A DNA stretch of 64,000 bases from Basidiobolus meristosporus CBS 931.73 (Eukaryota; Fungi; Basidiobolomycota), in assembly GCA_002104905.1 (NCBI GenBank), contig MCFE01000316.1, positions 1 to 64,000 of the forward strand, written 5' to 3'. Positions within the stretch are counted from its first letter, which is position 1. Each line of letters starts with the position of its first letter. This document shows positions 7,901 through 64,000 of this stretch, piece by piece. Both the position numbers and the translations under genes were made by a program. The notes below the pieces were generated by a model. That model saw nothing but the letters and a program-made list of their open reading frames with translations. It was not told the origin of the DNA and ran no database searches.

Positions 7901-9317
7901 TTGTCTTCCTATCTCCCCACACATCTGCTCCATAGGAAACTCCCAAAAGGTGAAGCAAGGCCCAATATTCTCCACACACCATGCAAGATGGAGTAGAAAA
8001 TGGATACAGTAGTGGCAGAGATCTACACATTCAGCTTTATGTTTGTTATATAGCCGCTCCAATCTTGTCACAAACTCCTCACACAACAGCTGCAGATGTG
8101 TCAAGTTGGCATTGGTGATCCGCTTCTGGAAAAGTATTCTTACAATGTCCACATATGACCCTCAATGCTACTAATGTACTCTTGGTAGGAATGGCTTCAG
8201 AACACCTCCTGAATAAATACATATCCAGTTCATCCAGTGTTTGCATTTGTGTTGTTGCATATGCATATGAATGTTAATTGGAGCCCATGAGAAGTACTCA
8301 GGGTAGTGGATACTTGGTAGTTTATTGCCAATTCTTTCAAATTTCTCCAGTATCTCAAAGGGCTCATTTAGCTTGAAATGCCCCATGTACAACTTGGTTG
8401 TCAGTATAGGGATATTGTTGAAAAGCAAATGCATTGCTCCTAGTGGAAAGCTTTTGCTCCAACAGATACCCTCCATCTTAAGTATCTCCAGTTTCCAGTT
8501 GATTCCATATTCTGGCCAATGGCTTATAGCTTGCCAACTTTGCTGCAATTGCATGCTTGCTTCTGTACATTTTCTCTGTGGAAAGATGATGCTCTTAGTG
8601 CTGGTGTTTGGGTAATAATAATGTGTGTGAGTTATGGAGTAAATCCCCTGGATCTCACACATTTGACAGCAATACTGTCCATTGTGCCCAGAAAAACCTG
8701 CTATCTTGCTGATGGCTGGGGTATCTCCAATGAAGATAGTAATATGCGCTTTTACATGATGGCCATTTACCTTTATCCTGCTGGAAAGCATACAAAATTC
8801 ATCCCGCAACTGATACAGGTAGCTATCCTGGTTGGATGGTGACTCTGGCTCAGATACCAGCAACACTATCATCAGATTATATCTCTGATACTGTAGGATG
8901 GGTGGCAAACTCAGAATGATGAGAACCAGTGGCCAGTAGGATTTGCTGGTAGAGTACTTGTTTAATGAGAATTCATCAAGTGCTTAGGCAAAGGCATGGT
9001 CATACATACCTTCAAAGTAGCTCTTGCATCTTAGCTGTTTGTAATGTCTACCATTGAAAATATTGGATATGTTTGCGCTTGATTAATATTAAGTGCGGTA
9101 CTGTATAGCTTTGCAATATTTGTTGGACTGCATCAGCTTCCTTAGATGGGGAATTACCGGAATATATCAGGAGTGGTAATGATGTTGTCCCTCAATGGTG
9201 GTGGATTCCTAGCAATTTGGACATATTGCAATGGTAGTAATTTTGGATGTGAATGCCATGCAACTGTTAACACATGCTTGAATCAGGACAGTCTCTGGAT
9301 CATATGTTGCCAGTTGC

Positions 9318-16169: not shown

Positions 16170-18425
16170 TTGGTGATATGCCAAAGTTCTCAAATGTATG
16201 ATCTGCTGCATTTCCAGGTCAGGTTCCAATGTTTTTGCCATAAAGTTTGCGCCTCAGTTAGAAAAGATTTCCACAGGGCAGCCAACTTTCATCAGGATCT
16301 CATGAAAGATGAGACTGTAGCTTCTTATTCATTGGCTTTGGGTACTGCACTAGCCACTAGCCACTTACTAGTGTGGTTAACTGCAACTAGGATCCACAAG
16401 TTGCATTTTGTGGTAGTGGGTAGTCATCTAATAATGCCAATTCCTCATTTCTCAGAAGGTTTTAAGACTCCAAGAGAAAATGCTCAGGGATTCTCTGTGG
16501 TTTACATTGGTTAATTTAGCAACTTGGGCATGTTTTCACCAGCTTCTCAAAATCTTGTTTCATTTTGGGCCACCATGTTCAAGCTTTTAGAAGGGTGCAC
16601 ATTCCTTCAATTCCAAGATTTCCATATCCATGGTGTAGCTTGTGTATTATATCCAGGTGAGCAACATAAAGGCAATAGGCAATAGGGCTTCAATCCACAA
16701 TCTGGTAGTGTTTCATCCTGCACTGCCAATTTGCTGGCTTCATCTCACACAATATTCTTGATATCCTCATCCATGTCATTAGGAACAGCTTGGTCCTCCA
16801 AGTATCTTAGTAATAAGCTGGACCAATTTAATTCATGCACCATGTTGAGTTGTGCAACTTGTTTTAGTCTTGGGAAGGCATCAGCATCCATGCTTTTTTC
16901 ACAGAGTAGTAGACAATCTCCAAGCCAAGTTGCTGAATGAGCTCCCTTCATCTTCCCATTCCTCTGCATAGAACCCTCTCAGTAAATATAATCTTGAGTG
17001 AGTCATGATCAGGTCTTTTATATGATTTGTAGTATAATCCTTTTCCAATATGAATATATACAAAAATGAAGAAGAATGAAGCTACACTTGCATGTGTATA
17101 TTGAATTAGCCAACCAAAGTTTACATCTCTCATTGTATGTTCTACACTTATAAAAGCTAAATCTACATGACTTGTATAATGCATTGCTAAAGTTACTCCT
17201 GTAATTATTTGAATTCCTAGACATACGCCTAATAATGATCCATAATTCCATAAGTAACTTATATTTGATGGTGATGGTGAATCTATTACATAACTATTAA
17301 CTATACTTAATAAAGAGTGACTTTTTAATAATATCATCTCTTGTTTACTTACCTCCCTCCTGGATGTCTTTAAGCAGTATACTATGCAAGCATCTCTTTC
17401 TTACACATTGAAAAGTTTTGTCCCGGCAAGTTCAGTGTTGTGGATTTAAAAGTCACTGGGCATTCCTTTACTTCATGCTTTTGGCTCAATACTCTGCCAA
17501 TTGGATAATCTGAGGCATCTGCACAAAGTGTAAACTCTTTTTTGAAGTTAGGTATTTCTAAGCATGGCACCTGGGTAACTTCATTCTTGAGCATCTGAAA
17601 GGCAGTCCCATGGGCTATGTCACACTTCAAGGTGTTGTCATTCCTGAGGATACCTGTCAAAGTGGCTGCAATATTTGCAATGTACAAATCTGCAATAATA
17701 GGGACCATTCCAAGAAATGATTGGAGCTCTCAAATACTATGGTGTGGCTTAAGATTCTTGATAACTTCCACTTTCTTGGGGTCTTAGATCACTCCTGTGC
17801 TAGTCACTATATGTCCCAGATATCCAACCTGTTCCTAAGAGAAGTCACTCATTGCTAGCTTGCCATATTTCTTGTTCCCTCTTGACTTTTTCAAGAACCT
17901 TCAATAGGCACCAAGTAATCCTCTTCTGTGTTGCTGTATATCAATATGTTGTCTAAGAAGATTGCTACAAGCTTGTTTAAGTACTGCTGAGAGATGGTTT
18001 GCATCAAGGCCATGAATGATGATGGGGCATTGGTACAACCAAAGCTCTTGACCACTTACCTGTAATATCCATATCTGGTCTTGATTGTTGTCATAGGTAT
18101 AACTTCTGCTTTCATGCTGGTCAGGTTGTATCCTTACATGAGATCAATTTTGCTGAATATTGTGGATCCATTATGTGGGTCCATAGGCTCACCAATCCAA
18201 GGTATGGGGTGCTTATTCTTCACAGTTACTTAGTTCAGAGCTTTGTAATAGATACACATTCATAGTTGTCCTTTCCTCTTCTTTGCAAAAAGCACTGGAG
18301 CTCCCCAAGGAGCCTTGCTGGGCCTGATGTATCCTTGCTTCAATAATTGATCAGTTTGTCTCATGATTTCTTCTAACTTGAATGGACTCATTCTGTAAGA
18401 GTATTCAGCAACAGGTTCCATATCA
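16170..18425 (-). mobile_element. Ty3/Gypsy pol relic (RT, RNase H, integrase), interrupted by the cob fragment
   Basis: YRMSPFKLEE...GYIRPSKAPWGAPVLF, GYLGHIV, CADASDYPIG.VLSQ, KEMLA, DHDSLK, and GCPVEI..HLRTLAYH in degenerate frames. Confidence 0.88.
17011..17358 (-). pseudogene. cob: Nuclear copy of the mitochondrial cytochrome b 5' end (NUMT, ~109 codons)
   Basis: Translation ...[78 protein letters not shown] is the cob N-terminus. AT-rich mitochondrial codon usage. ATG at 17337. Confidence 0.95.
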
Positions 18426-18427
18426 GG

Positions 18428-19023
18428 AGTATTTTGGATACCTTCCCAATCAGGATCAACAGACCTTCTAGAGGGCAGAGGGACTTTTATTTTGGCAAGT
18501 GAAAGGCACACTGTGTAAAGTTTCAAGCACTGTCTGACATTGAGGGTAACATCATCTGGTTTAGTGGGCCATCTGCTGGTAGTAAGCATGACAAAGCAAT
18601 CTGGGTAGAGAATTATCCAGAACTCAGCAGAGGGCAGAAAAATATGGCAAATTTATATAGGAGAGGATTGTCAGAGATTTGGATCTATTACAGCATATAG
18701 GAAGCCAAGGAAGAGTGTGCTTAGCAGGAAGCAGAAGCTCTACAATGAGATATTTATACATTTCAGAGTGAGGGTAGAGCATACACTTGGATATCTAAAG
18801 AGATTCAGCATATTGGCTGATAAATACAGAGGAAAGTCATATAAAGCAAGGAAAGCACTATTCTGAGCAACATCACTAAGATTAAATAAAATTACCAGTA
18901 ACTATGCTGTACCACTGACATTATGATAGATATCATGGTGCCTGATAATGCTGTAGAACGCCAGATCAAACCAGCACTTTAAACACACTGGCACTATGTG
19001 GCACTATCCAACAAAACCAGTCT
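18428..19023 (+). mobile_element. Relic IS5/ISL2-like (DDE_Tnp_4, PIF/Harbinger-related) transposon 3' half with right terminal repeat
   Basis: Reconstructed translation ILDTFPIRINRP..GQRDFYFGK*KAHCVKFQ..D..GNIIWFSGP.AGSKHDKAI..AN(D)L..YIG..TAYRKPRK..LSRKQKLYN..FRVRVEHTLGYLKRFSILADKYR. One stop at 18500 and one frameshift near 18655. The end at 19023 matches the foldback TIR at 25/28 nt. Confidence 0.82.
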
Positions 19024-22000
19024 GCTATATAGATATGGCTTTTGGTTTGTTCTCAGCCAATTTTCTCACTTTCTGATCTTGGACACTCTATCACATCCTA
19101 CATTTGTGCGCCTTGACTGGCTATTGCCTCTTTCTCACACTCCTTGCTTTCTGACTCAACTGTTTCTCTTAATTTTCATGCATACAAATTAATTTTTTTC
19201 CATTGAAATCTCAGTTGTACCTCAATTGCCAATTGTGTTGACCTATATAGGTCCCTATACCCTACACTTGTATTAAACCCCACCTTACACTCAACAAGTA
19301 ACTTTATCAAAATCCACCACTCAATATGAATTTCTGCTGTAACCCTCTGTTTCCATGACAATGGCAGGAACCCTACAGCTTTATACCACTGCTCATTCAC
19401 TGGTTCCCATACATCCTGGTCTTCAGCAGCACTGTATGGTCTAGCACCTTATCTGCCAGTCTTTGCAACAAATTCTTGAGATATTCCAGTGCATTTACTT
19501 GAGCTCTGCTCTTGAAGAAGTGCTGCAACCTGCTGATGTGCTTATAAATGTTCCAAAATTTCACTGAAGGCATTGTGAGATTACCTTTTAAGTTCTTGAC
19601 ATTGTTGGCATATCTGTCAGTTATTCTTGTATTGAACTATGTTTTTCCCTTGATAAATGCTGCTCTGATGCATCTGTGTTGGCCTGCTTGTCCCTTGCTG
19701 GCACTCTAAAAGCTACCTGAGGCTTCTTTCTGGCTTATTTTGAGCCTTCAGCCCACGCTGTGATGGGCTCCTGAGGTAGCTGCTCATTTATACTACTGCC
19801 AGGTCATTCATTGCATCTTTGACTGCATGCTTTTTGAATAAAAGTAGGCTTTTTCCTTGTAAAACGTTGTTCTGGTGCATCTGTGTCTGGCTGCTTTTTG
19901 CTTAATGACACGCTTCCAGCTACCTGATGTCTCTTAGACACTTGTTTTGAGCTTTAGGCCCTGCTTGTAACATGCACTTGTGGAGGCTGCTGGTTTTTGG
20001 CCATTGCACCCTTGTTCTTCTGCCTTTGATAGCCTATGCTATTCTTGGGATACCTTCTTAGCCTACCAACACTGGCACAAACCTGTTTGCTTGATTGAAT
20101 TCTGGATAATGTCCATGGAACAAGTCAATCACATTCTGCTTGGCCTTAAGCTCTTGAAGGTCCCATAGTATGCTGGCCATAAGGTATTTGCATGCTAGAC
20201 TTCCAACACCCTCTTAAGTATTGGCCTACTCTTCTTCATTGCACTCAATGGCTTCATGTAACTTTGAAGTCTTTTGATTTTGAGGCTTTGCTATGAACCC
20301 TACATTTTCTCCCTCCCATGCAGAGATAGGTTTTTCCGTGAGCTTTATCTTTTGGAATGGCTCTTCTGCTTCAAAGATGGGACAGTATTCCTCTGCTATT
20401 ACATTGGGAGATGGTTCAATTCTTGGCTGTGACTTTGAGCTACCTTGGTTCCTTCTTTGCAGCAAAGATACTGCTTTTCTACCTGGAGTATTGATTGATC
20501 TACACCTTTTATCTGCTCACCCTGTTTCTGGACTATTTCTCAATTTCTCTGGGTCATTGCATCTATCCTATTAGCCATTGCACCTAAACACCTCAATAAT
20601 GCTGTGGTATGAGCTGACAACGTTTGTGCTAAAACTGGTGGTGGTGATATGGCAATGGCCACTTGCTGATCTTCAACTAAGGATTTAACTTTTGCCACAT
20701 TCTCATCTTCCTCAGCATTATGGTCAGCTTGCAGCTCTGCAGAGATTGCAAAGTGTCAACTTGACTGAGAGCTTGGGGAGTCCACATTATACTGTTATTG
20801 GGCAAACTGCTCACAGGGCCTTTATTTGTTATAGCCGTGCTTGTTGCACTGAATGTCAAAGCATGCTGTTGTCCAACTGTTCTTCTACTACTGTCAGCTG
20901 CAGGGTTTGGTTGCAAACCAGACTATTTACTTTATTTTTGGGGGCAAATACATAAAAGGGAGTCAAAACAAAGGGTTAATGACGTTACATATATGTGTAT
21001 ATATGGTGCCACAACTTTATTTACAATGCCTATTAATGCAAGTCATCATTCAATCTTACATCCATGTAGGTGCAATGTCTCAGTTACAAGACTGTCTTGA
21101 ATTCATAAAAGCACTGACAAAAAAGTAACATAATAATGTTATGTTGTTGAGCATTGAACTGTTGCCCCATCAACAAGACTACTTTGATTCAATGCTATAA
21201 AGGAAGAGAAAAAAGACCATGTGTCTACTGTAGCAAGCCTCTCAGCCATGAAGTATGCAGAGAGCATATAAAGTAATACAAGGATCACAACCAGTGCTTT
21301 GTCATGCTAGTCATATTTGACCATTTACTAGTCACTACTGTACTAGCAATATCTTGCCAGTCACTTGATACTTCTATAAAAGCACCTAGCTGCACTTGCC
21401 ACCCTGCACAAGCCAGGTCAGGTGAGTTTGTGATGCCTTTAGGCTCACCCCAGTCCTCTGAATATGGGAGGCAGAGTGATAGCTCTGAAGAAGCAGGCTC
21501 ACTGAGGGTTTGTGAGCCTATGCACCTAACAAGAGTAGCCTGTACAAGCCAGGCAAAATCCCATTGTGCAATGAGACAATACCAGTGGAAATAAATGTCA
21601 AGGATACTTTGTGGAGTCAAGTGAGCACAGTAGTCCATCTACAGGTAATATATGTGATGCTGTGGGTAGAGTAGTGGCTTGTTTCCAGTAATATCGGTAA
21701 TGTGGGCTTTGAAGATTTACTACTACATCTTGCTAAGATCATCCATGATGCAACTTACCATATATGTGCTATAAATGGACAAATATCCAGGGGCTGGCAA
21801 CATAGAACCCAGAGACCATCAGGGTACCAGCATGTGTCTACAGTTGCATAGCATTCACATCAGAAAATGCCTCCATTGCAAGGTACCCAACTTGTCAGTA
21901 ATCCACTACCATTGATGGAAAACATTGCTCACACTCTGGATATATTCTGACAGTACCCTATCTGAAGAAGCTCATGTAGCTCTACAAATATTGTGAGGCT
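19024..22000. mobile_element. CACTA copy E1 (ORF2 on - ~19190-20947; transposase N-terminal part on + ~21170-22000), truncated
   Basis: Reverse-orientation homology to copy A across ORF2, the intergenic region and the transposase 5' part. Heavily mutated. Confidence 0.8.
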
Positions 22001-25000
22001 ACGTGTGTATGAATGTTAATTGGAGCCTGTTAAAGTATTTAGCTTAGCTGATACTATGCAATATCCTGCCAATTCTTTCAATTTTCCTGGTATCTCAAAG
22101 GGCTCATTTACCTTGAAATACCCCATGTACAGCTTGTTTATCAGTATAGAGGTATTGCTGAAAAGCAAATGCTTTGCTCCCAGTTGAAAGCATTTGTTGC
22201 TGCATATACCCTCTATCTTAAGTATATCTGGTTTCTAATTAATTCTATATTCTGGCCAATGGCTTATAGCTTGCCGGCTTTGCAGCTATTACATGCTGAC
22301 TTTGGTACATTCTCTGGGTGGAAAGATGCTGTTCTTGGTGTTGGTGTTTGGGTAATACTGATGTGTTTGAGTTATGGAGTATGTCACAGTATCTCATACA
22401 TTTGACAGCAATACCATCAATATTGCCAGAAAAACTGGCTCTCTTGCTGATGGCAGTGGTATCTCCAATGCAGAAAATAATATGCACTTTGAAATGCTGC
22501 TCATTGACTGTTATTCTGCTGCAAAGCTTACAAAGTTCACCCAGCAATGGATACAGGCAGTTATCCAGGTTGGACAACAATTTGCACTCAGATACAAGTG
22601 AGACTACCATCAGATTTGAGCTATCAAACTCTAAGAGAGGCAGCAGATTCAGGCTGATGAGAGTCAGTGGTAAGCAGGATTTGCTAGTAGAGTACTTGTT
22701 AAATGAAAATCCATCAAGTGCCAAGCTAAAAACATGGTCATAAATGCCTTCTAAGTAGCCCTTTCTTCTGAGCAGTTTGTAGATTTGCCATCAGATGTAT
22801 TGGATATGCTTGCACTTCATTGAAACTGAGTGTTGTACTCCATAGCTTCACATATTTGTTGGACTGCATGAGCTACATTAGATGGGGTATTACCAAAATA
22901 AATCTGGAGTGTAAGCAATGTTTTCCTCCAATGGTGGTGGATTCCTGACAAGTTGGGCCCCTTGCAATGGTGGCATTTTTGGATGGTAATGCCATAAAAC
23001 TGTTGACACTTGCTGGTAACAGGACTGACAGTGGGTTATATATTAGACTTGTTCCGTTGGATAGTGCCACATTGAGCCATGAGTGCCAGATGATGCCATA
23101 GTGTGCCAGAGAGGCCAAGTGAACCTATACTTGGCCACAGAGTGTGAAACAAAGCTCTGCATCTTCATGCAAAGCAGCCCCTGTGTTTCACCCATTGCGC
23201 AGGAGAAAATCCATTTTTTGATGTTTTTTTGTGGATCAAAGTTGTGCAGGATGTGTAAGAGAACAGGAGAACTGAAGATATGCATCTGGTACTCAATACC
23301 CACGGCACTCTGAATCTAGCTCCTGTAGCTTGTATCATGTCACAAAAATGAATGGCACTATCTTGGTCCACTGGTACTATCTGGCACTATATTTGAATAT
23401 TAGCCCTAAAGTAAGATCTATACAAAGCACTTATAGTGCCAGATAGTACCAGTGGACCAAGATAGTGCCATTCATTTTTGTGACATGAAACAAGCTACAG
23501 GAGCTAGATTCAGAGTGCCGTGGGTATTGAGTACCAGATGCATATCTTCAGTTCTCCTGTGCTCTTACACATCCTGAGCTACATTGATCCAAAAAAAAAG
23601 GTCAAAAAATGGATTTTCTCCTGCGCAATGGGTGAAACACAGGGGCTGCTTCACTTGAAGATGCAGAGCTTTGTTTCACACTCTGTGGCCAAGTATAGGT
23701 TCACTTGGCCTCTCTGGCACACTATGGCATCATTTGGCACTCATGGCTCAATGTGGCACTATCCAACGGAACAAGTCTATTGCTTGCCACATTACTGTTG
23801 CTTATTTATACCATGTATATGGTAGGTTGCATCCTGGGATGATTTTTGCAAGAAGTAGTAGTATATCCTCAAAGCCCCCATTAATGATATTATTGGAATT
23901 GATCCACTTCTCTAGCCACAACATCACATATATCACCTGTAGGTGGATTACTGAGCACACTTGACTCCATAAAGTATCCTTGGCATTATTTCAACAGGTG
24001 TTGTCTCATTGCATAATTGGATTTTGCCAGGCTCAAGCAGGGTACTTTTGTCAGCAATGGTAGGCTCACAAAGCTATCACTCTGCATGCCATACTCAGAA
24101 GGCTGGGGTGAGCCTAAAGGCATCACAAACTCACCTGACTCAGTTTGTGCAAGGTGATAAGTGTGGCTTGGTGCTATTATAGAAGTCTCAGGAGGCCAGC
24201 AAGATATTGTTGATAAAGTGATAACTGGTGAATAGCCAAATATAACTTGAGTGGCAAAACACTGACTATGATTGTTATGGTACTTCCTATGCTGACTGAA
24301 TGCTGCATGGCTGAGAGGCTTACTATAATAGACACAAGGTCTTTTTTCTCTTCTCTTACGGAATTGATTCAAAGTAGTCTTATCCATGGGGCAAATTGTT
24401 TGACCCTCAATACAACGCTATTATACTACTTTTTTGTCAATGCTTATGTGAATTCAAGACAGTCTTGTAGTTGAGATATTGCATCTACATGAATGTAAGA
24501 TTCAATGATCTCCTTACATAATAAGCATTGTAAATAAAGTTGTGGCACTACATACACACATAACTGTATCACCATTTTCCCTTTGGTTTGATTCACTTCA
24601 ATATATATGCCACCAACAATAAAGCAAAGTTGTCTAGTACCCAACCAAACCCCACTGCTGACAGCAGCAGAAGAACAGTTGGACAACAGCTTGCTTTGAC
24701 ATTCAGTGCAACAAACAGGGCTACAACCAAACAAGGCCCTGTGGACAGTATGCCCACTGAAGGTCATAGTGCAGACTCCTTGGGCTCTCAGTCAGGTAGG
24801 TAATTGTGAGCTTTGGCAGTGCTACAAGCTGACCATACTGCTGAGGCAGATGGGAATATAGCAGAAGTAGTACCTGCACTTGAAAACCAGCAAGTGGCCA
24901 CCATAACATCACCACCACCTGTAATGATGTGTTTTCAGCTCATAGCAAAGCATCAATGAGGCATCTAGGTGCAATGGCTGACAGGATAGATGCAAAGACC

Positions 25001-28671: not shown

Positions 28672-31190
28672 TGTTATGATCTGCTGCTTGAATGTTTAAG
28701 ATAGATCTGTTTTTGTCAGATCAGTTTACTTGAATGGAGAAATCAGTGGAGTACCTGCCACAATCATGATTGACTCAGGAGCACCACATGAGTACATGTT
28801 GGAGCAATTTGCTTTGAAAGCTGGAATCAACTCAGAACCCACCAAATCAACTGCAGCCTCAACAGCTAATGGGAACTCTCACATAATCAACCCTATCACT
28901 CAGCCAGTAAGGATGAAGATCAATGACTATGAAGAAGATCTACAGGCCTACATATTTAGGAACTGCAAGTTTGACCTTGTACTTCCAAAAACCTGGCTAT
29001 TTACTCATAGTCCATCAATCAACTGGAGAACCTATGCAACTCAGATCTAGAAGGACAACAATATCTATGAGCTATTACCTTCCAGACTGGATTTTAACTT
29101 AGTCAATTCCAGTGTGTGTGAAACAAGTGAACTTAGCAAACACAGCTTTGTAGAGCACTAAGAAAAGGCACCCAGTTGTTCCTCATGGCAGTATTACAGG
29201 GGGATACCTATACTCCAGAACCCCAGTGGGTCCAGACTCTTTTGAAGGAATATCCAGACGTATTTCTGGATGAGCTTGTAAGCCTAACACCAGTCAGAGA
29301 AGTGGATTATGTCAGTAAAACAGGAGATAGCCCTCCAGTGAGTAAGACACCAACAGAATGAGTCCATTGGAGTTGGAAGAGATGAAGAGACAATTAGATC
29401 AGTTACTGGAGCAAGGATATATCAGACCCAGCAAGTCACCTTGGAGAGCACCAGTACTATTTGTGAAGAAGAAGGATGGAAGACTTAGGATGTGCATTGA
29501 CTACAGAGCCCTCAGCTTGGTTACTGTGAAGAATAAGTACCCCATACCTTGGATTGATGAGCTTTTGGACCAACTCAATGGAGCCACTATTTTCAGCAAG
29601 ATTGACCTCATGTCAGGATACAACCAGATTAGGGTAAAGCCAGAAGACATCCCTAAGACAGCATTCAGGAACAGATATGGACATTACAAGTACTTGGTTG
29701 TGAGTTTTGGCCTCACCAATGCCCCTGCAACATTTATGACACTGATGCAGACCTTCTTCCAGGAGTACTTAGATAAGTTTGTGATAATCTACCTAGATTA
29801 TATATTGATATACAGCAAGACAGAAGAGGATCACTTGGTGCACATTAAAAAGGTCTTGAAGAAGCTAAGAGAGAACAAGCTTTATTGCAAGCTACTCAAG
29901 TGTGAATCCTTCAAGGAACACATTAGACTTGTTCCGTTGGATAGTGCCACATTGAGCCATGAGTGCCAAACAGTGCCATAGTATGCCTGAGAGTCATAGC
30001 AGACCTAAACTTGGCCACAGAGTGTGGCATATAGTTCTTCATATTCATGCAAAGCAGCCCTTGTGTTTCACCTATGGTGCAGGAGAAAATCAATTTTTTA
30101 ACCTTTTTTTTGGGATCAAAATTGTGCATGACGTAAAAGAGCACAGACAGACTGAAGATATGCATCTGGTACACAATACCCATGGCACTCTAAATCTAGC
30201 CCCACAGGCTTGTAGCATGTCACAAAAATGCATGGCACTATCTTGGTCCACTGGTACTATCTGGCACTATATTTAAATATTAGCCCTAAAGTAGAACCTA
30301 TACAAAGCACTTATAGTGCCAGATAGTACCAGTGGACCAAGATAGTGCCATGCATTTTTGTGACATGCTACAAGCCTATGGGGCTAGATTTAGAGTGCCA
30401 TGGGTATTATGTAACAGATGCATATCTTCAGTCTGTCTGTGCTCTTTTACGTCACGCACAATTTTGATCCCAAAAAAAATGTTAAAAAATTGATTTTTCC
30501 CGTACAGTAGGTGAAACACAGGGGCTGCTTTGCATGAATATGCAGAACTATATGTTGCACTCTGTGGCCAAGTTTAGGTCTGCTATGACTCTCAGGCACA
30601 CTATGGCACTATTTGGCACTCATGGCTCAATGTGGCACTATCCAACGGAACAAGTCTATTGAATATCTGGGACACATAGTGACTAGCACAGGAGTAACCT
30701 TAGATCTTAGGAAGGTTGAAGTTATCAAGAATCTGAAGCAGCCCCATAGCATATCAGAGCTCAGATCATTCCTTGGAATGGTTTCCTATTATTGGAGATT
30801 TGTCAAGTCCTTTGCAAGTATTGCAGCCCCTTTAACTAATATCCTCAAGAAAGACAATACCTACAAGTGGGACATAGCTTGTGAGACTGCCTTCCAGACG
30901 CTCAAGAATGAACTTGCTAAGCTACCAAGTCTAAGAATAAATAACTTCAGAAAAGAGTTTACTCTGTGCACAGATGCTTCAGATTATGCAATTGGTGGAG
31001 TGTTAAGCCAAGAACACAAGGGAAAGGACTACCCTGTTGCCTTTGAATCCAAGAAACTGAACTCAGCAGAACAAAAATATCCAGTGCATGAGAAGGAGAT
31101 GCTTACTATAATACACTGCTTGAAGACATTGAGATGCCATATTGAAGGAGTCAAATGCATTGTGAAGAAGGATCATGCCTCCCTCAAGTA
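28672..31190 (+). mobile_element. Ty3/Gypsy pol relic (aspartic protease, RT, RNase H), interrupted by foldback copy 2
   Basis: MIDSGA protease; [46 protein letters not shown] and YLDY (YLDD mutated) in RT; TDASDYAIGGVLSQ and YPVHEKEML in RNase H. Confidence 0.93.
29925..30657. mobile_element. Foldback non-autonomous element, copy 2 (347/346-bp arms, 40-bp spacer, ATT TSD)
   Basis: Same termini and spacer as copy 1, ATT at 29922-24 and 30658-60. Excision restores RT ...[16 protein letters not shown] with the same spacing as the homologs near 17810 and 38110. Confidence 0.95.
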
Positions 31191-43031: not shown

Positions 43032-45181
43032 CTAAGAAACAGGTGAAGGTGGTCTGGGGTTATGTTGAGGGCATCTAAACACTTTGATTTCCCCAGCATG
43101 ATTTCTTTGCTGCTCTGCTGGGGTCAAATTTGGCCACTGAACCTCTAACGCATCCAGTAGTCTGGTCTCATCTATGAAAGGGAGCAATGCAGGGGCCTCC
43201 CAGGATGCGTTGGTCCCTACCATATCTACGGGATGCTTCTTTGGGTAGAGATCAATGATAGGGGAAGCAGGATCCACCATGAGCTTTCGATAACTGAGAG
43301 GCAAAAGATCACATGAGCTAGCTGGGAGCACGCTCATCAGATGTTCTAGAGGCCGAAAGGGTGCACCAAGGCTAAACTTCATGTCAAACGGCGGGAAGGC
43401 TTGCAACTCGGAGACCAGTGGTGCGTAATGGTAGGGATAAAACCAACTCCAAGATACTACGCCACGATAATAGTAATGTAGAAGCCATTGAATCCCTTCA
43501 ATGTAATGCTGTACCACTCGGTTGATGCTAGATCTATCATTGAAGTCTAGATCAAATTTTGACTTGTAATAATGAGACTTCCACCGAAGATATCCGTCTG
43601 TCATTGATTAAGGTAAGCTATGGGGTTCAGTATCTGTCGTAAATTAACAATACCTGTCTCAACTGGCTTGGTGAACCGTCGGGGATCCTCCAAATAATCT
43701 CGTTGAGAACGACTTCTGAATTCCTCGTCTTCGTGGGAGGAAAGGCGGGCAACAAACGCCCTCAGACGGCAAAGGTCAACAGCCCCCTGGTGATTAATGT
43801 AGCCGTCGATCTCTACGAGGGTGAGACGTTAGCTCAGGTTGGCCAGCGATCTCATAGGAATAGAATTTACCTCCGTCCTGAACAAGAGACTTGTATGTGC
43901 TTAACACATATTCCAGAGGATCCCTGACCGTGTTCAGCATCGGCAGTCTAGGCAGGAAGTCATTTCCCACAAAAAAGGTCAACATCACGATATCATCTAT
44001 GATTTTCTCCAAGTCGTAGTCAAAATGCTCCAATGCCTGGAAAGAAGCGAACTCGTGTTCGAAATACTTCCTTAATGTAGAAAGTCGGAAGAGCGTGAAA
44101 TTTTGTGGGTTCAGGGGTTGGCTGGAAACCCAGGCGGTGAGTGTGGGAGTAAGAGATACGGGCCAGACTAGAGTTTACCTTCGGTTTTTGGAGCCAACCC
44201 TGCTCGGAGTGAGCTTCTCCTTCATCACCACAAAATTCGGCTCGTGACTGAGCAAGCCTAGGATAATCAAGTCGGAGTCGGAGCCATAGAGGCAGTGTCG
44301 ATGATCTGGGCTGTAATCAGACGATTCGCTGGCGTTCCTTAGGAATTCCAAAATTTTGTGCTCTCCCTCGCCTGGCACCTATGCTTAAGTTTGTGAATTG
44401 ATTCGCTCCATGTGCTAAGGCTGCATGTTGATGTACCTCGTGGTTTGACACCAGCACCTGGAGCTTTTGCCAATCGGCATCTTTAGATACCTGCCTGCGG
44501 ACAAAATCCTCGAGGTGAGAGGAAAGGTCGTTCATGAATTCGGTGCCTGGTTTATGAAGTTGGTTTAGCATGGTGTATAGATATACAAGTACGCGCGAGA
44601 CAGAAAAACTATACCTGGTGTGATACTATTGGTGTCAAAGGCTCTAGTGTTTTTCGAGTTTCTGGCCAAGCTTTGAACGCTACTAAAGCGCCTGGCTCTT
44701 TGCTGATTTAATTTTGCTCTAGGAGAAACCCCTAACTTGATGAACCAAGGCTCAGCCCGTGTTATCACTACCACACAGGCAAGTGAACTGACCGTCAATC
44801 GCAACGAACAAGAGCTTTTTCGGCTTTATCCTCTTCACCAGATATGCCAGATAGCTTGTTACTGCTCCGAAAACAGTTTCTTCCGAGAATTTCGTTTTTG
44901 GAGCAGCCAATCTTGCCTGACAAGAAGAATGGATAATCCCATTCAGATCCACATACAGGTTATCTATATTCTTTACTTTTGGACACGCATCAGCCAGGGT
45001 CTTTCCACATTCTCCCAAGGGACACTTACGGTAGTTGCAAACACGGTTTTCATTTACATGTTGAAAACATTGGGGGTACTTTTGGCTGTTTGTTTCGAAG
45101 AAAGCGGTTAGGATGTCTTTCGATAATGTGGAGTGAGTCATTCTTTAACCTCAACCACCGATAGAAGTTCGGGATGCCCAT
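43032..45181 (-). CDS. Compact XRN-family (Xrn1-like) 5'-3' exoribonuclease, ~560 aa, 9 exons
   Basis: Spliced model MGIPNFYRWLSQKYP..IDNLYVDLNGIIH..AIDGVSPRAKLNQQRARRF..FDTNSITPGTEFM..EVPGEGEHKI..HCLYGSDSDLI..FVGNDFLP..WFYPYHYAP..LPFIDE. Eight GT-AG introns (first 45149-45086), no frameshift or internal stop, TAG at 43032-34. Confidence 0.88.
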
Positions 45182-46048
45182 GTCGCTTTCAAGGCTGCCA
45201 CACTGGACCTGGAGAGAATCCGGATGCAATACAATTATGGCCTTGATAAATAGCTCAATAAATCTCATCAGCGATAGGCTCAAATCAGATGATTAATTAG
45301 CAGAAATCACAATCGTGACAATTTCTCTGGAACACTACCCACGATTCCTCTATCCCGTGAGAAGAACCAATGGTGCCCGTCTGCGGGATCTCTGTGAACT
45401 GAAGCTTGTTGCAAAGAAAAGGCATACCTGGGCATAATACGAGGCATACGCACTCTCACGAAACACTCTCCCTTGGCCTAATCTGTCGCTGTCCTCCACA
45501 CACAATCCAATGGTGCGAGCGATGGTTGGCAAATCAATGAAGGGGGGAAATCGATGCCTTAGCCATTGTTTATGAAGGTGTTCGAAGTGCCAACGAGGTG
45601 GTAGGGTTATCCAGATCCTGCCAACACATGCGGAGCAAACAAACTTGCTGCTACGTGATGTATGTCTCGAGGTGAGCGTGCCATAGATCGCTCCTGACTT
45701 GATCCATTGATTCAACTAAACGATTGGAACGGGTTCCCATATTTGACCAGGGTGCGTCATAGTGCCAAAATGGAACTCCTCACAAGGTCATCCACACAAT
45801 CGCTTCGAGCCTCATATTCGTAGCAGCTGGTATGACTCTGGATGGTATGGTCATTTTATGCGCATCATGCGTCATCTTCTGAACAATGGACAGTCTCACT
45901 AGGAGAATTGCACAATTCGCTCAAAATCCATTGAATAAATCGCAGGAGTGGCGGCTATTTGATTTCGGTCGGTCATTGATTCCTATATCTCTAAACCAGA
46001 CTCAACCTTAATCCACTAATCCACCGCCATATTTTGACCTTTTGAACC

Positions 46049-46720
46049 ATGTCGTTTAACGAGCCCTTCCCCGATTACTACAGTATCCTTCAAATCTCTG
46101 AGAACGCAACTGATGAGGAGATCCGTGAGGCATACAAACGAGAGGCGTTGAGAAACCACCCGGATAGAAATAGAGAAGATCCTGACGCCACAAGGAAGTT
46201 TCAGTTGATCTCCGACGCCTACTTTATCCTTAGCGATGCCACACGACGATCGCAGTACGACCAAGCAAGACGCAGCCAAAGCCACAGCAGCTGGGCTAGA
46301 CAGTCGCAAGATGCCCCTGCTGCGGATGAGACCTTTGGAAATGTCTTCGAGGAGATCTTAAAGCCCGAGGTTGAAAATCCAAAGTGGCTGTACACTCCTC
46401 TGGGCTCTGTGGCAGGCGGTATATTGGGGTTCATCTGCGGCAGTATACCTGGTGCATTGTTGGTAACAAACAGATCGTAATGCTCTATCGTAAATGTCGA
46501 GTCGGATACTAAAGCTAATGCTTAGGGATCTTTTGCCGGTGCCAAACTAGGTGCAGTTCGTGATAACAAAGGTAAGTGCCCTGTTCCAAGCAATAAATGT
46601 TGACCTTGACCTTATGTGGCCTTATCCACAGGGGTGTCCGTTTATGAAGCATTCATGAAATTGCCACAAACTCAGAAGTATGCCATTCTGCAAGCGTTGG
46701 CGGCCAAAATCCTCAAATAG
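46049..46720 (+). CDS. J-domain (DnaJ type III) protein with a C-terminal Gly-rich hydrophobic segment
   Basis: DYYSILQ..IREAYKREALRNHPDRN..KFQLISDAYFILSD..RSQYD. Exons 46049-46462, 46526-46571 and 46632-46720. Confidence 0.9.
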
Positions 46721-47434
46721 GTTTAGTGGGCTCCGAGACCTGACAACGATCGGCTGCCTTGATACAGAACGACTTATTAGCCTATTGTATGGAACGACAT
46801 CCCATGTTATCGATCCTCTAACTCTTTGTGATCTCTCGAGGTCCCGATCAAGTGTAATCTCAGTATTTGATTGTATAAGAATATAAATGTATCATTTGTT
46901 ATTTGATGGCTGTTTCTTGGCCACTCGTTGATTTTCCTTGAGCCGCCATTCACGTCCTGACCAGGCATCCATTCTTCATACTTTGATGGATCAGCAGGCC
47001 AGGGAGCACTGGGTTGTTTGAGGCGCACATATACCACCCTCCAACATTCGCCTCAATCCAGCATGGAAATCCATAGAGGAAATTGCAATTGTCACCCAGC
47101 TGTGGAAGGGCGTCACATTTGTGGAAGCGACTAAATCATGATGATGGGCCATCGTAATGCTAGTCGCTGGATTGCTTGGTTAAACCAAACCTAAATCCGA
47201 TTCGATCAGTTTGGAGGGTTCCTTGGTAAACGAAAATGCCAGAACAGAAATTAGAGGATTCCACCACTCATGTTAGAGAAAAAAAGGCAGCTCAGAAAAA
47301 AACAAATATCTGTGTGGCCCTGTGTAACCAACCTCCTGGCCTCAGACACTCCACCAAACCAAATTTTTCGGATTCCTGTGAAGGCTGTTGAGATTTCGTT
47401 AGCCACCTGCCCCTTGTAATCTAGAAGCGCCAAG

Positions 47435-49342
47435 ATGATGCAATCTCCCGTTATCGTTATGAGTCAGTTGATTCAGCTCTCAACCATATCTTCGTTGTTG
47501 ACTCCTCTCTAACGAAGGCAATTGCTGACTTACACTAGATACTAATACCCAAAGAGAGTCGGGTAGAAAAGCCCAGATCTCTAACATCACTGCGGCCAAG
47601 GTTCTTACACTTTATTCCTCTGATCCATTCGCTACCTTCTATCCTAACGCAATGCACTTTCCGTAGACCGTAGCTGACGTCATCAGGACCTGTCTCGGTC
47701 CCCGTTCTATGCTGAAGATGTTACTTGATCCCATGGGTGGCATTGTTTTGACCAACGATGGAAACGCTATCCTTCGCGAGGTTGAGGTTGCTCATCCCGC
47801 AGCCAAAAGTATGATCGAGCTTAGCCGCACTCAAGATGAAGAAGTCGGTGATGGCACCACCTCCGTAATCATCCTTGGTAAGATATAGCCCCCACCCTGA
47901 GAGAGTTTCCCGGTCTGTGGCTAAATCCTGTGTTCCACTAGCCGGAGAAGTCCTCGCAACCGCTGCTCCTTATTTGGAACGCAACATCCATCCTATCGTG
48001 ATTATTTCGGCATTGAAAAAGGCACTTGAAGACGCAATCAAGATTGTTGATGAGATCAGCCACCCAGTTGATATCAACGACAACAAAGAGATGTTGGATC
48101 TTATCAAGGCCTCGATCGGCACCAAGTTTGTTAGTCGCTGGAGCGAATTAATGTGCAAGCTAGCTCTTGATGCTGTCAAGTGTGTCGCCACCGACGATAA
48201 CGGAAGACGTGAGGTTGATATCAAAAGATACGCCAGAATCGAAAAGGTAAGATCGAAAGCACCATCTTCGTCCAAGTGCCCGCACGATTAACGCTCGGTT
48301 ACACCAACCACAGATCCCCGGTGGAGAAATCGAGGAATCTCGTGTGCTTGATGGTGTGATGGTGAATAAGGATGTTACTCATCCAAAGATGCGCCGTCGT
48401 ATCGAAAACCCTCGCGTGATTCTTCTCGACTGTCCCCTTGAATACAAAAAGGGGGAGTCCCAGACCAACATCGAAATCACCAAGGAGGAAGACTGGAATA
48501 GAATCCTTCAAATCGAAGAAGAACAGATCAAAGCGTTGTGCGATAAGATCATCGAACTCAAGCCGGACCTAGTCATCACTGAAAAGGGGGTTTCCGATCT
48601 TGCTCAACATTATCTTCTAAAGGCCAATATCACTGCTCTTCGTCGTGTTAGGAAGACCGACAACAACCGTATTGCTAAAGCTACTGGCGCAACCATCGTC
48701 AACCGTGTGGATGATTTGAAGGATGCTGATGTCGGTACCCAGTGCGGACTCTTCTCGGTTGAGAAGATCGGTGATGAATATTTCTCATTCATGACACAAT
48801 GCGAGGATCCTAAGGCTTGTACCGTACTTCTACGTGGTCCTTCGAAGGATGTGTTGAACGAAATCGAGCGTAACCTTCAGGACGCCATGTGCGTTGCCCG
48901 CAACGTATACTTCAACCCCAACCTGGCCCCTGGTGGTGGTGCCACTGAGATGGCTATTAGCGTCAAGTTGGCTCAAAAGGCAAAGACTCTCGAAGGTGTT
49001 GAGCAATGGCCCTACATGGCTGTTTCGGAAGCCATGGAGGTTATTCCCCGTACTCTTGTGCAGAACTGTGGAGGAAATGCTATCAAGGTCTTGACCCAGC
49101 TGAGAGCCAAGCATGCTAATGGAGATCATTCCTGGGGTATTGATGGCCATGCCGGCAAGATTGTGGACATGTTGGAGTACGGTGTCTGGGAACCCAACGC
49201 AGTGAAGGTTCAAACAATCAAGACTGCCATCGAGTCCGCGTGTCTTTTGCTTCGTGTCGACGATATAGTTTCTGGTGTTTCCAAGAAGCAAGCAGCTGGG
49301 CCCAGTGGCCCAGCCCCTACTCCTGAACAAATGGAGCAATAA
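47435..49342 (+). CDS. CCT3: T-complex protein 1 subunit gamma (CCT/TRiC chaperonin)
   Basis: PVIVMNTNTQRESGRKAQISNI.AAKTVADVIRTCLGPRSMLKM..GDGTTSV..VNKDVTHPKMRRRIENPR. Four GT-AG introns. Confidence 0.96.
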
Positions 49343-50271
49343 GCGCAATGATTGTACAACTCATATTTCATCGTCACCTGCAAATGTAATTTTCCTAGTT
49401 GATATCATCTCTTCCACACCCTTTATCCCATAGGCCACAACTAAATACACAGAAGCCGAATGCAGTAGTTTCATCAACTGGATAGCTCGGCCCGTCATTC
49501 CAAACCACTTGGTCATCAATAAAGGCTCGTTCCGGTACATATGGTACGGAAAGTCAATTATCAGTGGCAAGGATATTAGTTGCTTTTTATGTGCATCCGA
49601 CTGTTTGGTATTTCTAACAGATGAATGCCGCATATCGATAGGCCACCCCATATCGGACGAATTTCCCCGAAACAGAGTCGTCTGTTTAGTAATCAGTCAG
49701 AAAATCGACTCGCAGTAGCAGGAGCAACAGGTATAGCAAATAACCGTATGGTATCTCCCTTGAGTGCAGTGATCATGAGGGATACAGTGCGCTGCAATCA
49801 CAGGATAATGGACATGTGAGTGCGGGCTTTACCTCGCTACCTCTTCAATTATGTGGCAATTTGTCCGACTCTTGACCGGTGTACCTCACACGATGGCACT
49901 AACAACCCTTGTCCAGATCTAGGGAACCACGAAATAAAAGCAAACAAGCTCCCAACTATTACGCAGAGAAGAGAGCCATTGTAGCTTTGCCCCACCTGTT
50001 TCATCAACAGTCACTTCTGAAGAAACCTCTTGCGGAAGTGTTCCATTTTGAGGGCCGCTATTTATACGCTAGACTGCTATTTCAGGTTAGTAACTTGTCA
50101 AGCTTTCCGCTCCCTCACCCTTCGAGTTTCTCAATAGTTCCATTCCGTTCGGAAATTCCTACAGAATTCAATTTCCGGGTATTTGAACAGGCTAATTGAC
50201 CACCAAGCTTGGAATCGAATCCACAACTTGATCTTACACTTTCCCACCAGGTTGACTTCGGATCTCCAATC

Positions 50272-53200
50272 ATGACCAGTCTAAGGCGTGGCAAAACCCT
50301 TACTAGACCTGATCGAGTTCATGCTCCGGCACCTATGTTGAGAGGCCAGAATAGGCGTAAGACCTTAGACCCTTGGGTGCTGTTCTCCAAGTTGGTCACC
50401 TTCTGGGCGCCCGGGTTTATCCTATCGAAGATTGGAATGCCAGAGAAGGCCAGCCGTCAGGCGTGGAGAGAGAAGGTGGCTCTATGCTGGATAATTGCGT
50501 TGATCGGTGGAATGGTGGCATTTCTAACACTTGGGCTACCGTACGTGTTTTGCCCGCAAAGCGCAATGGCCAGCCTGGAGAACTTTGCCCAAATCAACAC
50601 CAATACCCCAGGTACTGTTCTTCCGAATTTTCCCTCAAGCCATTGAAATCATAACCATTCATTGTCTTTAGGGTTGGTTGGAATCAATGGCATGGTGTAT
50701 TCAGTAATGTCCGGAAAAAACAACCCAAGCTTCCCCTCGGGGCTAGACATCAGCAATCAATTCCAGCATGGCTCCAATGTTGATGCTTGTCGTAATCCAC
50801 TGATCAGTGGCTACCCGTCCGCTATGTATGGACCATGTGTCGCCAAAGGAGGAAATGAAGGCTGTCCGCTACCTCCGATTGAAGAGTCGGCCAGCAATTA
50901 TGGGCTGATCCCCACTGGCAGAAAATTGGGATACGACTGGGTCGACGTCCCAAACAACTTCTTCGTAATTGACGGGCATGTTCTGAACCTTACGCCGTAT
51001 CTCAAGGCTTTCCCTACTGCGAGCCCGGATGATGTCGTAGATCGAGCCATTAGAGAGGCCATTGACAACAGGATCATCGATGCCACAAGAATATTTCTTC
51101 GAAAGCCCGAACTGATCGCCTCGATTCCCTGTTTGGTTGGGAAGTATTTCGCCGGATATCTTAGCAAAGCTACGCCCGGTTGCTTCGGTGTGAAACTGTT
51201 CTTCGTCATCTCCATGGTGATCATCCTTGGGATTGTATTGACCCGCTTCTTCATGGCCGTCATATTCGATTGGTTCCTCTCTTTCAAGCTTGCTCGTCCC
51301 CCTCGACAACAGGCCAGACATATCATTGGATCGAAATCGGCACCGTGGGCGAATGCAGGCTATAATGCGGAAGTAAAGCAGATCCAACTCAATCCCAGCG
51401 ATCTATTTACCGTTCTTCTGGTAACCTGCTACTCCGAAGGGGAAAGCTCACTAAGATGCACTATTGAGAGCCTTGCGACTACAGACTACAGCGACGATCA
51501 CAAATTATTGTTCGTAATTGCCGATGGAATGATCACCGGAAGTGGCAATGACAGAAGCACACCGGACATTTGCGTAGATATGATCGAGCTGGATCCGCAG
51601 TTCGCTGATCCCCAACCACAAAGTTACATTGCGGTTGCGTCGGGAGCAAAACAGCACAATATGGCCAAGGTCTATGCTGGGCACTTCGTTCACGAAGGGC
51701 ATCGCGTCCCTACTGTTGTGGTCGTCAAGTGCGGGGCTCCTGAGGAGCAGACTAAACCTAAGGCGGGAAACCGCGGGAAACGAGACTCCCAATTGATCCT
51801 CATGAACTTCTTCAGTCGTGTCACCTTCAACGATCGTATGACTCCTCTAGACTACGATCTTTTTACTAAGATACACCACCTTACTGGAGTCACTCCGGAC
51901 TACTTCGAGATTGTGCTGATGGTAGATGCTGATACCAAAGTCTACCCTGATTCCTTGGGATTACTCACCAATTGCATGATAAACGATCCGATGATCATGG
52001 GGCTTTGCGGGGAGACTAAGATTGCCAACAAACGGGACTCGTGGGTAACCGCGATCCAAGTCTTTGAATACTACATCTCCCACCACCTGGGCAAGGGCTT
52101 TGAATCGGTATTTGGAGGTGTGACTTGTTTACCGGGCTGCTTTTGCATGTATCGGCTTAAGGCACGTAAAGGAGATAGCGATTGGGTTCCGATCATTACC
52201 AAACCAGAGATAGTACAGGAATATTCCCAAAATGATGTCGAAACACTGCACCAGAAGAACCTACTTCTACTTGGGGAGGATCGGTTCCTGACCACCCTGA
52301 TGTTAAGAAACTTCCCCAACCGAAAGATGATGTTCATGCCTCAAGCGATATGTAAAACCGTGGTTCCGGACGAATTCAACGTGCTGCTATCCCAACGTCG
52401 TCGTTGGATCAATTCCACCATTCATAATCTCATGGAGCTTGTGCTAGTCCGCAACCTGTGCGGTACATTTTGCTTCTCTATGCAATTCGTGGTGGTGATG
52501 GAGCTGATTGGCACAGTATCCTTGCCAGTAGCTATCATCATGACTTACGTATTGATATACTCCATTGCCACAACCACCTTTACTGATGCAGCTAGCTATT
52601 ATCCTTTGATCCTTTTGATTCTCATCCTTTTCCTGCCCGCAGTTCTGATCCTGCTTACCACCCGGAAATTAATCTATATCGCATGGATGTTGATTTACCT
52701 TGTGGCTTTGCCTGTTTGGAACTTCATCCTTCCAGTGTATGCGTACTGGCACTTTGACGATTTCTCGTGGGGCGAGACACGTAAAGTCGCGGGAGAGACG
52801 AAGGATGATGATCATGGGAAGAAGGATGGAGTGTTCGATTCAAGCAAGATAACCCTGCGTCGATGGGAAGACTATGAAAGACGTCGATTGCGCCAGGATA
52901 AAGTGGACGCACCAACTCATTGGAATTCTCCATTAACCGGTAATGCGGACAACTACCATCCTTACAACACTCACCGATCGCAGAGAGAGTTTGGAAACCA
53001 CCGCCCGGAGAAGAACCTTTTCTTTCAGCGGGATCATGCGCAGGAGCAAACTGCATCGTGGTATGTAGATGAAGATTGTATGACTTCCTACGGAGAGCAT
53101 ACGAGACATACCATGCACGACGAATTCGAACCTATTCCCCAACTTGATCATACAGCGCAAAGAGAGTTGAGCCGCCTCTATGGGCCTCACCTACATCAAC

Positions 53201-53304
53201 ACCAGCATATCTCGATGGCCAACCCCCCAAACCTTCAGCAATCACGTCCCCATGGCCCAAGACCGCAACCACCAAGAAAGAACCACGATTTCTCCCGTGA
53301 ATAG
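50272..53304 (+). CDS. Chitin synthase, class IV (Chs3-like, division 2), no myosin motor domain
   Basis: [51 protein letters not shown] and QRRRWINST. Intron 50612-50671. The start codon is uncertain because an upstream exon is possible. Confidence 0.93.
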
Positions 53305-53713
53305 ATACCCTGGATTCAATGTACTGCCCACACGATAGCCTTGTTTATCGACTGTTTTTATTCAAACTCCTCCATTTCCACCCTGGCCTGACCCAGCAGC
53401 AACCTGGCGAACTTTCCGTTTCTCATCGCTCATCTATCTAAGTAGCCCAATAAAACTCATCTCGAACTTCCCTCAAATAGTGTGTTGGGTTCGGCGACTT
53501 GAGGACTTGGAAGATCGAAACAACGAAAGATACCTCTAAACCATAACCACCCCTGCTGGGCTTTATTAAATTAGGAGCACCAGATATTATATCAAGTCAC
53601 GGACGAGGTGGAACGGGGTACTAATATGATATATAAACACGTGCAGATGCAACTTGTCAAAAAACAAACTTCAGTGAAGTGGGTTGGGGGATCTCTCCAG
53701 CTCGTGGATGCGA

Positions 53714-55507
<1,794 letters not shown>

Positions 55508-59191: not shown

Positions 59192-59493
59192 ATCTCGGCA
59201 ACACGATATCAAAATCTACACAAGAGAGAACTCCCAAATGCATAGGTCTCTGCCATCAACCACGGTCGTGGAGTGCCATCATGCCCCCAATCTCAGATAG
59301 CTTGAATATCAAAAAAAATCCGATATTTATCTCCCATAATTTCCAATAATATATTTCTTTATTTCGCATCAGGCTTATGCCACCTTCCATAGGCGCCAAG
59401 TCATTGACTCAATGTAATGTTGGGCGGTTGAGTCAGTAAAGCTTTACAAGATATAAACACCATTTACAGCGCGCTTCTTCGCAGCAGAAGATA

Positions 59494-61008: not shown

Positions 61009-61100
61009 TTGTCTGAAAATGTGCGTAAAAGGCTTTGGTAAAGAGGGTTCAAGAGGTAGAAAGGTGACGTTTGGATGATGAACCGGCCAACAAGGGTTTA

Positions 61101-61107
61101 TTTTATA
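61101..61107 (-). promoter_or_regulatory. Candidate TATA box of the pyruvate kinase gene
   Basis: TATAAAA on -, ~93 nt upstream of the ATG, followed by a CT-rich leader. Sequence motif only. Confidence 0.35.
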
Positions 61108-63806: not shown

Positions 63807-64000
63807 ACCGAAAATGCCAATGAACGAGGTAAATGATATTAGGGATTGAGTGTGCTCGATATGCTTGAATGGAGAGTTTAAATGGAAAAGTAGTAGGGAA
63901 CAGATTATGACGCCGTGTTCGGTCATCTTCCTATTTATATATTTTTCTTGAGGTTGCACTTTAGTCACCGTTATCGAATTGGGCAACACCCATATTTGGA

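Follow-up and report, generated by a model that had tools for sequence, protein, structure and literature searches.

A decayed, probably Pangu-type transposon in Basidiobolus meristosporus and its probable relationship to two foldback elements

The window, i.e., the whole stretch of 64,000 nucleotides of Basidiobolus meristosporus DNA analysed here, carries in its right third (44-64 kb, 47% GC) long exons of chitin synthase, pyruvate kinase, TCP-1 chaperonin and FGGY kinase; its pyruvate kinase is 91% identical to a Basidiobolus ranarum protein. The left two thirds have a GC content of 40% and form a mosaic of nested diverged repeats. The observed/expected ratio of CpG is 0.06 in this repeat field (positions 1-42000) versus 0.83 in the genic part (44000-64000), and GpC is normal in both. 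A loss of CpG that is limited to the repeats fits methylation-driven decay or a CpG-directed mutation process. The transposon relic described below has the GC content (40%) and the CpG loss of the fungal repeats that surround it.

Positions 18397-19023 are the dead right part of a cut-and-paste transposon. They start with the C-terminal two thirds of a small DDE transposase, continue through non-coding 3' sequence and end in the right-hand terminal inverted repeat (TIR). The transposase pseudogene fragment (18397..18866, plus strand) covers residues 109-263 when set against a Pangu-type DDE transposase of 294 aa; the first 108 residues are absent through 5' truncation. Its frame is preserved in three pieces, all on the plus strand. 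Piece 1 (18431-18499; ..ILDTFPIRINRP..YFGK) runs into an in-frame stop (18500-18502, plus strand) at a position where all relatives have Tyr. Piece 2 (18503-18655; KAHCVKFQ..GSKHD..MANL) and piece 3 (18654-18863; YIGEDC..YRKPR..LSRKQKLYN..RVRVEHTLGYLKRF) are set apart by a frameshift near 18650-18656, within the ADLAY motif, and a premature stop (18864-18866, plus strand) ends the coding part. The first catalytic D (in LDTF) and the catalytic E (in VEH) are retained, and the second catalytic D has become N. Owing to the stop, the frameshift, the exchange of the catalytic D and the 5' truncation, the relic itself cannot supply transposase. Neither a second ORF nor the left end of the element has left a trace within the window.

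The identity of the fragment is evident from its intact relatives. With two intact 294-aa proteins (P0174 and P0121) as queries, tblastn against the window returned an E value of 3e-52 and 59-64% identity over 18398-18857, in two blocks: residues 109-194 match 18398-18655, and residues 196-263 (P0174) or 196-258 (P0121) match 18654-18857 in the next frame. No second match to either protein was found by tblastn anywhere in the 64-kb window. At the DNA level, four short Logan contigs encoding the 294-aa protein (L001-L004) are 70% identical to the relic across 18397-18843 (blastn). When the 85-aa relic piece at 18609-18863 was used in an exhaustive HMMER search, one clearly closest representative emerged, again P0121 (294 aa, 62% identity, E 1.2e-21). 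Two of the relic pieces separately match Pfam DDE_Tnp_4 (E 6e-5 and 3e-5, each slightly below the gathering score), and intact P0121 matches this family at 8.6e-23; except for an overlapping DDE_Tnp_1, the intact relatives have no further Pfam domain. The catalytic triad D122, D193 and E237 is invariant in the alignment of the family (A1). The DDE_Tnp_4 core that the original prediction had pieced together from broken frames is thus present in three pieces, as borne out by the Pfam and tblastn matches, but its proposed boundaries have to be moved. Homology begins at 18397/18398 instead of 18428, the stop at 18864-18866 closes the coding remnant earlier than 18925, and the terminus, thought to lie about 100 bp downstream, is found 157 nt past the relic's stop (at 19023).

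On its left side, the cut 5' edge of the relic is abutted by a Gypsy-type reverse-transcriptase fragment (17364..18396, minus strand), which was recognized by blastn to a second Gypsy copy in the window (29353-29920 and 30659-31129). The ORF at 18260-18589 on the minus strand bears the reverse-transcriptase motif YIRPSKAPWGAPVLF. A reading of the reverse strand of 18431-18499 (..LPSRR..D..) as a continuation of the Gypsy polyprotein was rejected, since Gypsy DNA homology ends at 18396 and the transposase alignment is unbroken from 18398 onwards. One and the same junction, 18396/18397, truncates the Gypsy fragment on the minus strand and the relic on the plus strand, as would be expected from a deletion or illegitimate joining and less so from a simple nested insertion.

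On its right side, the coding remnant is followed by a subterminal non-coding region (18867..18988, plus strand) that bears no significant resemblance to either the foldback interior (see below) or the 3' sequence of intact relatives; a global alignment with the 3' region of L001, terminus excluded, gave z = 1.2, which is not significant. The right TIR (18989..19023, minus strand) consists of an 11-nt tip with three decay mutations, then two copies of ATAGTGCC 10 bp apart. It is adjoined by GCT (19024..19026), which is not of the form ANT; the left end for comparison is missing. From 19036 on, the sequence belongs to a different repeat family, with three further copies in the window (5107-4545, 13462-12998 and 26886-26261).

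When the terminal 28-mer of the relic (18996-19023, reverse-complemented) is aligned with the four foldback ends, it agrees with each of them at 25 of 28 positions. Of the three mismatches (positions 6, 10 and 11), two are C>T, exactly as had been predicted. We read the three differences, which fall in an otherwise conserved tip, as decay; a CpG is affected by one of the two C>T changes. The inner 17-mer is found without mismatch at only five ends in the window, namely that of the relic and the four of the foldbacks (chance expectation 0.01). The similarity of relic and foldbacks is confined to 18989-19023 (~35 nt). A separate motif, TGACTTGTTCC, which is one mismatch away from the Pangu tip, recurs at 3965, 20117 and 31235, each time within a copy of one other repeat family. 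These sites are not among the five matches to the inner 17-mer, and the recurrence of TGACTTGTTCC is probably due to a single chance match copied along with its repeat.

The foldbacks themselves are two elements located downstream of the relic. The first one, FB1 (23045..23778, 734 bp, arms 96% complementary), is flanked by ATT on both sides (23042-23044 and 23779-23781). The second one, FB2 (29925..30657, 733 bp, arms 95% complementary), lies inside a Gypsy copy and is likewise flanked by ATT (29922-29924 and 30658-30660). The two are 85% identical to each other and extend from AGACTTG to CAAGTCT. In paralogous repeats, the site corresponding to FB1 is empty and reads GTG (2265-2267) or GTT (9306-9308). 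For FB2, the empty site is found in the Gypsy fragment adjacent to the relic (17826-17828), where the plus strand reads AAC (GTT when turned to match the filled copy). Filled sites with ATT on either side, set against a single GTT or GTG in the diverged paralogues, indicate a target duplication of 3 bp, ATT. Being short and non-coding, with long inverted arms, TIRs, target duplications and two insertions in unrelated repeats, these elements are foldback MITEs. Their interior matches neither the relic nor the right end of L001 beyond the TIR. As only ~35 bp are common and the interiors are unrelated, relic and foldbacks are linked through their TIR, motif and target duplication, not through descent by deletion.

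FB1 and FB2 hold six CpG each (observed/expected 0.17-0.18), one of them inside the TIR, and therefore look younger than their surroundings. When the two are compared, 38 arm positions carry the same change in both arms of a copy, and 28 differences affect one arm alone. The palindrome has therefore stayed symmetric during the divergence of FB1 and FB2, possibly through distinct master copies or through homogenization between the arms.

The intact relatives provide the termini with which both kinds of element can be compared. Their contigs finish in AGACTTGTTC(C/T), followed by ATT or AAT (one-sided flanks). The element in L001 terminates with ..GGAACAAGTCT at 1736 (184 nt past the stop codon), and ATT adjoins it; that in L003 terminates with ..AGAACAAGTCT, followed by AAT in a flank that differs from that of L001. 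In the JGI metagenome contig L047, whose transposase (P0198) shares just 37% identity with P0121, the element again terminates with ..GGAACAAGTCT, followed by AAT, 430 nt past the stop. The relic terminus has the same orientation as these ends and lies 157 nt past its own stop. All ends compared begin with AGACT, and their common TIR is 28-35 nt long. The same tip and an A-N-T flank in relatives down to 37% identity imply that these are features of the whole transposase clade. If the predicted pairing were correct, copies of relic-like transposases should end like the foldbacks; the tips in L001, L003 and L047 do so, which favours the pairing.

Inward of the tip, the ATAGTGCC repeats provide a second link. 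In the window, 15 of the 16 occurrences of ATAGTGCC fall within the relic end and the two foldbacks (2.3 expected). L001 has three copies, all within its terminal 80 nt; two are direct and spaced 10 bp apart, in the orientation opposite to that of the relic pair and further inward from the tip. Counted from the tip, the first copy spans position 16/17-24 in the relic, in the foldbacks and in L001, and it is so placed in all lineages with an identity of 59% or more. In L047, the right subterminal region (1840-2040) is packed with GATTAATCG-like repeats in place of ATAGTGCC, its 11-nt tip and AAT flank being unchanged. Thus, across a divergence down to 37% transposase identity, the tip AGACTTGTTCC is constant, whereas the subterminal repeats differ (ATAGTGCC versus the GATTAATCG type). 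We infer that the ATAGTGCC repeats are putative, family-specific binding sites and that the tip reflects a requirement of the catalytic site. Besides, there are 42 single matches to the exact TIR 17-mer in metagenomes (two contigs are labelled as human-gut). The best of them has an adjoining tip matching at 7 of 11 positions; as none adjoins the AGACTTGTTCC tip, we dismissed them as chance matches.

A second ORF, on the opposite strand upstream of the transposase and without a match to any Pfam family, is present in L001, in L047 and in the 2984-nt contig encoding P0185. The second-ORF fragments of L001 and L047 have no similarity to each other, both being partial, so that they may not overlap. 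In L001, the 885 nt of the intact transposase coding sequence (668-1552) are free of CpG, and the region in front of it (1-667, promoter region and start of the partner ORF) has an observed/expected ratio of 0.96. Some transposases of this clade (the relatives P0128, P0130 and P0196) possess a conserved C-terminal extension of ~60 residues (..VEFYM..TWWA.K..Y.AR..G.LS.RLVG..) without a Pfam match, which might be a chromatin-reading or targeting module. Close relatives in the protein database number 11, and word searches with P0121 and with alignment A1 returned no annotated Basidiobolus protein.

Taken together, the relic is most probably a dead transposon of the Pangu type, and the gene-less foldbacks were moved in trans by intact members of the same clade residing elsewhere. 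The foldbacks share the tip, the inner module and ATT duplications but carry no gene, which suggests that they are non-autonomous elements moved in trans; with the copy in the window being dead, the intact copies moving them must be located elsewhere in the genome. The proposal that the family of the relic mobilizes the foldbacks thus holds in part. It is the clade that shares the terminus, the ANT flanks and the ATT duplications with them, but the relic itself is inactive and has only ~35 bp in common with them. The data support an ordinary pair of parent and parasite transposons, the pairing being supported at the level of the family.

The working of such a pair can be envisaged as follows. 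An autonomous element would encode a ~294-aa transposase with HTH and DDE parts and, upstream on the opposite strand, an ORF of no known motif. Its ends would be formed by the conserved 11-nt tip AGACTTGTTCC, followed in Basidiobolus-type families by ATAGTGCC repeats. Intact two-gene copies elsewhere in the genome would supply the DDE transposase and, by analogy with PIF/Harbinger, the partner protein. The two proteins would then recognize the common ends and cut the element out, and reinsertion would occur at A-N-T through a staggered cut that duplicates 3 bp. FB1 and FB2, possessing the ends without the genes, would ride on the machinery of the intact copies.

Two other readings of the locus have to be weighed against this one. 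The foldbacks may have been mobilized by another subfamily, e.g., one of the L001 type, the relic being a mere cousin with a conserved tip. The L001-type tip is identical to that of the foldbacks (11/11), the tip of the relic has three mismatches, and the tip is conserved even in a relative of 37% identity, so that sharing it does not single out one subfamily. At positions 12-28, however, the relic equals the foldbacks (17/17), whereas the L001 type has several differences and a gap of 1 nt; moreover, the tip differences of the relic (two C>T, one at a CpG) fit decay in a region where the observed/expected ratio of CpG is 0.06. We regard mobilization by another subfamily as rather unlikely, though worth keeping in mind. 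It is far harder to believe that the terminus at 18989-19023 is the leftover of a separate foldback or MITE merely abutting an unrelated transposase fragment, and we give this reading very little credence. The locus is indeed a mosaic of truncated elements, the similarity to the foldbacks is gone beyond ~35 bp, and the alignment of the 3' regions of the relic and its intact relative is not significant (z = 1.2). But the tip of the intact relatives has the same orientation (184 nt past the stop in L001 and 430 nt in L047, 157 nt in the relic), and the second ATAGTGCC of the relic stands 10 bp from the first, a spacing found also in L001, in opposite orientation and further in. In addition, the sequence inward of the relic 28-mer differs from the foldback arms, which means that it is not a foldback fragment.

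The origin of the family had been left open between an undescribed lineage and a bacterial (endosymbiont) source, as the protein looked closer to IS5/ISL2 than to canonical Harbinger. This impression was correct and is already explained by Pangu. In fact, a resemblance to IS5, an ANT target and a TIR that starts with AG have all been published for the eukaryotic Pangu group, which is already defined by the first two (PMC4482050). The intact relative does match the NCBIfam IS5 model NF033581 (E 8.6e-15), and the small number of close database relatives (the 11 proteins mentioned) might also speak for a foreign or novel lineage. However, the score of 54.8 bits is far from the cut-off of 140, which was reached by none of 10 further matches either. 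Scanning one genome for each of 185,579 species of bacteria and archaea with alignment A1 and two peptide patterns found no relative, though distant IS5 kin could be missed in this way. The relic is situated in a CpG-depleted fungal repeat field and has the same GC content of 40%, and the two-gene layout and the foldback MITEs are traits of eukaryotic PHIS elements. Since the IS5 score is below the cut-off, no prokaryotic relative was found, and composition and CpG loss are fungal, a bacterial origin is unsupported. We therefore consider it very improbable that the relic derives from a bacterial or endosymbiont IS5/ISL2 element, or that it stands for a hitherto undescribed eukaryotic lineage outside all PHIS groups. 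A doubtful but somewhat less remote idea is that the Basidiobolus family and its metagenomic relatives form a deep basal branch of Pangu, adjoining IS5 and so far uncatalogued, in which the tip AGACTTGTTCC has remained fixed and the subterminal repeats were replaced. If true, this branch would allow tip recognition (catalysis) and subterminal binding to be told apart in a natural PHIS transposition system. Most probably, the relic is just a further copy within the already described Pangu (Harbinger2) group, neither bacterial nor a new lineage.

The Pangu-type relic thus adds a decayed copy to such a family in an early-diverging fungus, fungal Pangu having so far been reported from ascomycetes and basidiomycetes only. 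Furthermore, the foldback MITEs of the window are now tied to a likely transposase clade, which aids the repeat annotation of this genome. The existing knowledge of how such elements work remains unchanged. Of wider use may be that transposases of very different sequence go with one strictly conserved 11-nt tip and ANT target.

Pangu was described as a group of the PHIS superfamily whose 5'-ANT-3' target duplication was verified on empty paralogous sites (Han et al. 2015, Mob DNA 6:12; PMC4482050), and it equals Harbinger2 of Repbase according to Kojima 2025 (PMC12730594). Its TIRs are 11-40 bp long and usually start with AG or GG, and its two ORFs encode a DDE-only transposase and a protein without known motif (PMC4482050). 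Pangu adjoins bacterial IS5, which has the same ANT target, and was found in animals, algae, two ascomycetes and three basidiomycetes (PMC4482050). Foldback MITE partners were not catalogued by Han et al. 2015, who noted that MITEs may have been missed (PMC4482050). The present family agrees with this description. A catalytic core alignable to DDE_Tnp_4, as is characteristic of PHIS, is found in the relic pieces and P0121. An ANT duplication surrounds FB1 and FB2, and the one-sided flanks of the relatives read ATT, AAT and AAT, the single flank of the relic being GCT. The TIR starts with AGACT and measures 28-35 nt, and two ORFs are found in L001, L047 and the P0185 contig, the relic being truncated. 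Based on these defining features rather than on phylogeny, we infer that the family of the relic belongs to Pangu/Harbinger2.

In common with canonical PIF/Harbinger and Tourist-like MITEs, the elements described here have the DDE_Tnp_4 fold, two genes, a 3-bp duplication and partners that share little beyond the TIR. They differ from canonical PIF/Harbinger in their target, which is ATT/AAT (ANT) here and TWA (TTA/TAA) there. Also unlike canonical PIF/Harbinger, the partner-ORF fragments of the relatives (partial as they are) have no match to Myb/SANT, and the plant PIF model is not matched. With bacterial IS5 (NF033581 type), the family shares a DDE core alignable over ~125 residues and the ANT preference reported for IS5 (PMC4482050). 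It is distinguished from it by a score far below the cut-off, the lack of any prokaryotic relative in the pattern-based scan, the two-gene layout and the eukaryotic host. ISL2EU elements make 2-bp duplications (Repbase classification), whereas the empty sites in the window show a duplication of 3 bp; the superfamily is the same. Spy, of the same superfamily as well, makes no target duplication according to the title of PMC4122938, in contrast to the 3 bp duplicated here. The published Pangu elements resemble the family of the relic in the ANT duplication, the AG start of the TIR, the small DDE-only transposase, the motif-less second ORF, the closeness to IS5 and the presence in fungi, and the difference lies in the host, which is the early-diverging fungus Basidiobolus rather than an ascomycete or basidiomycete.
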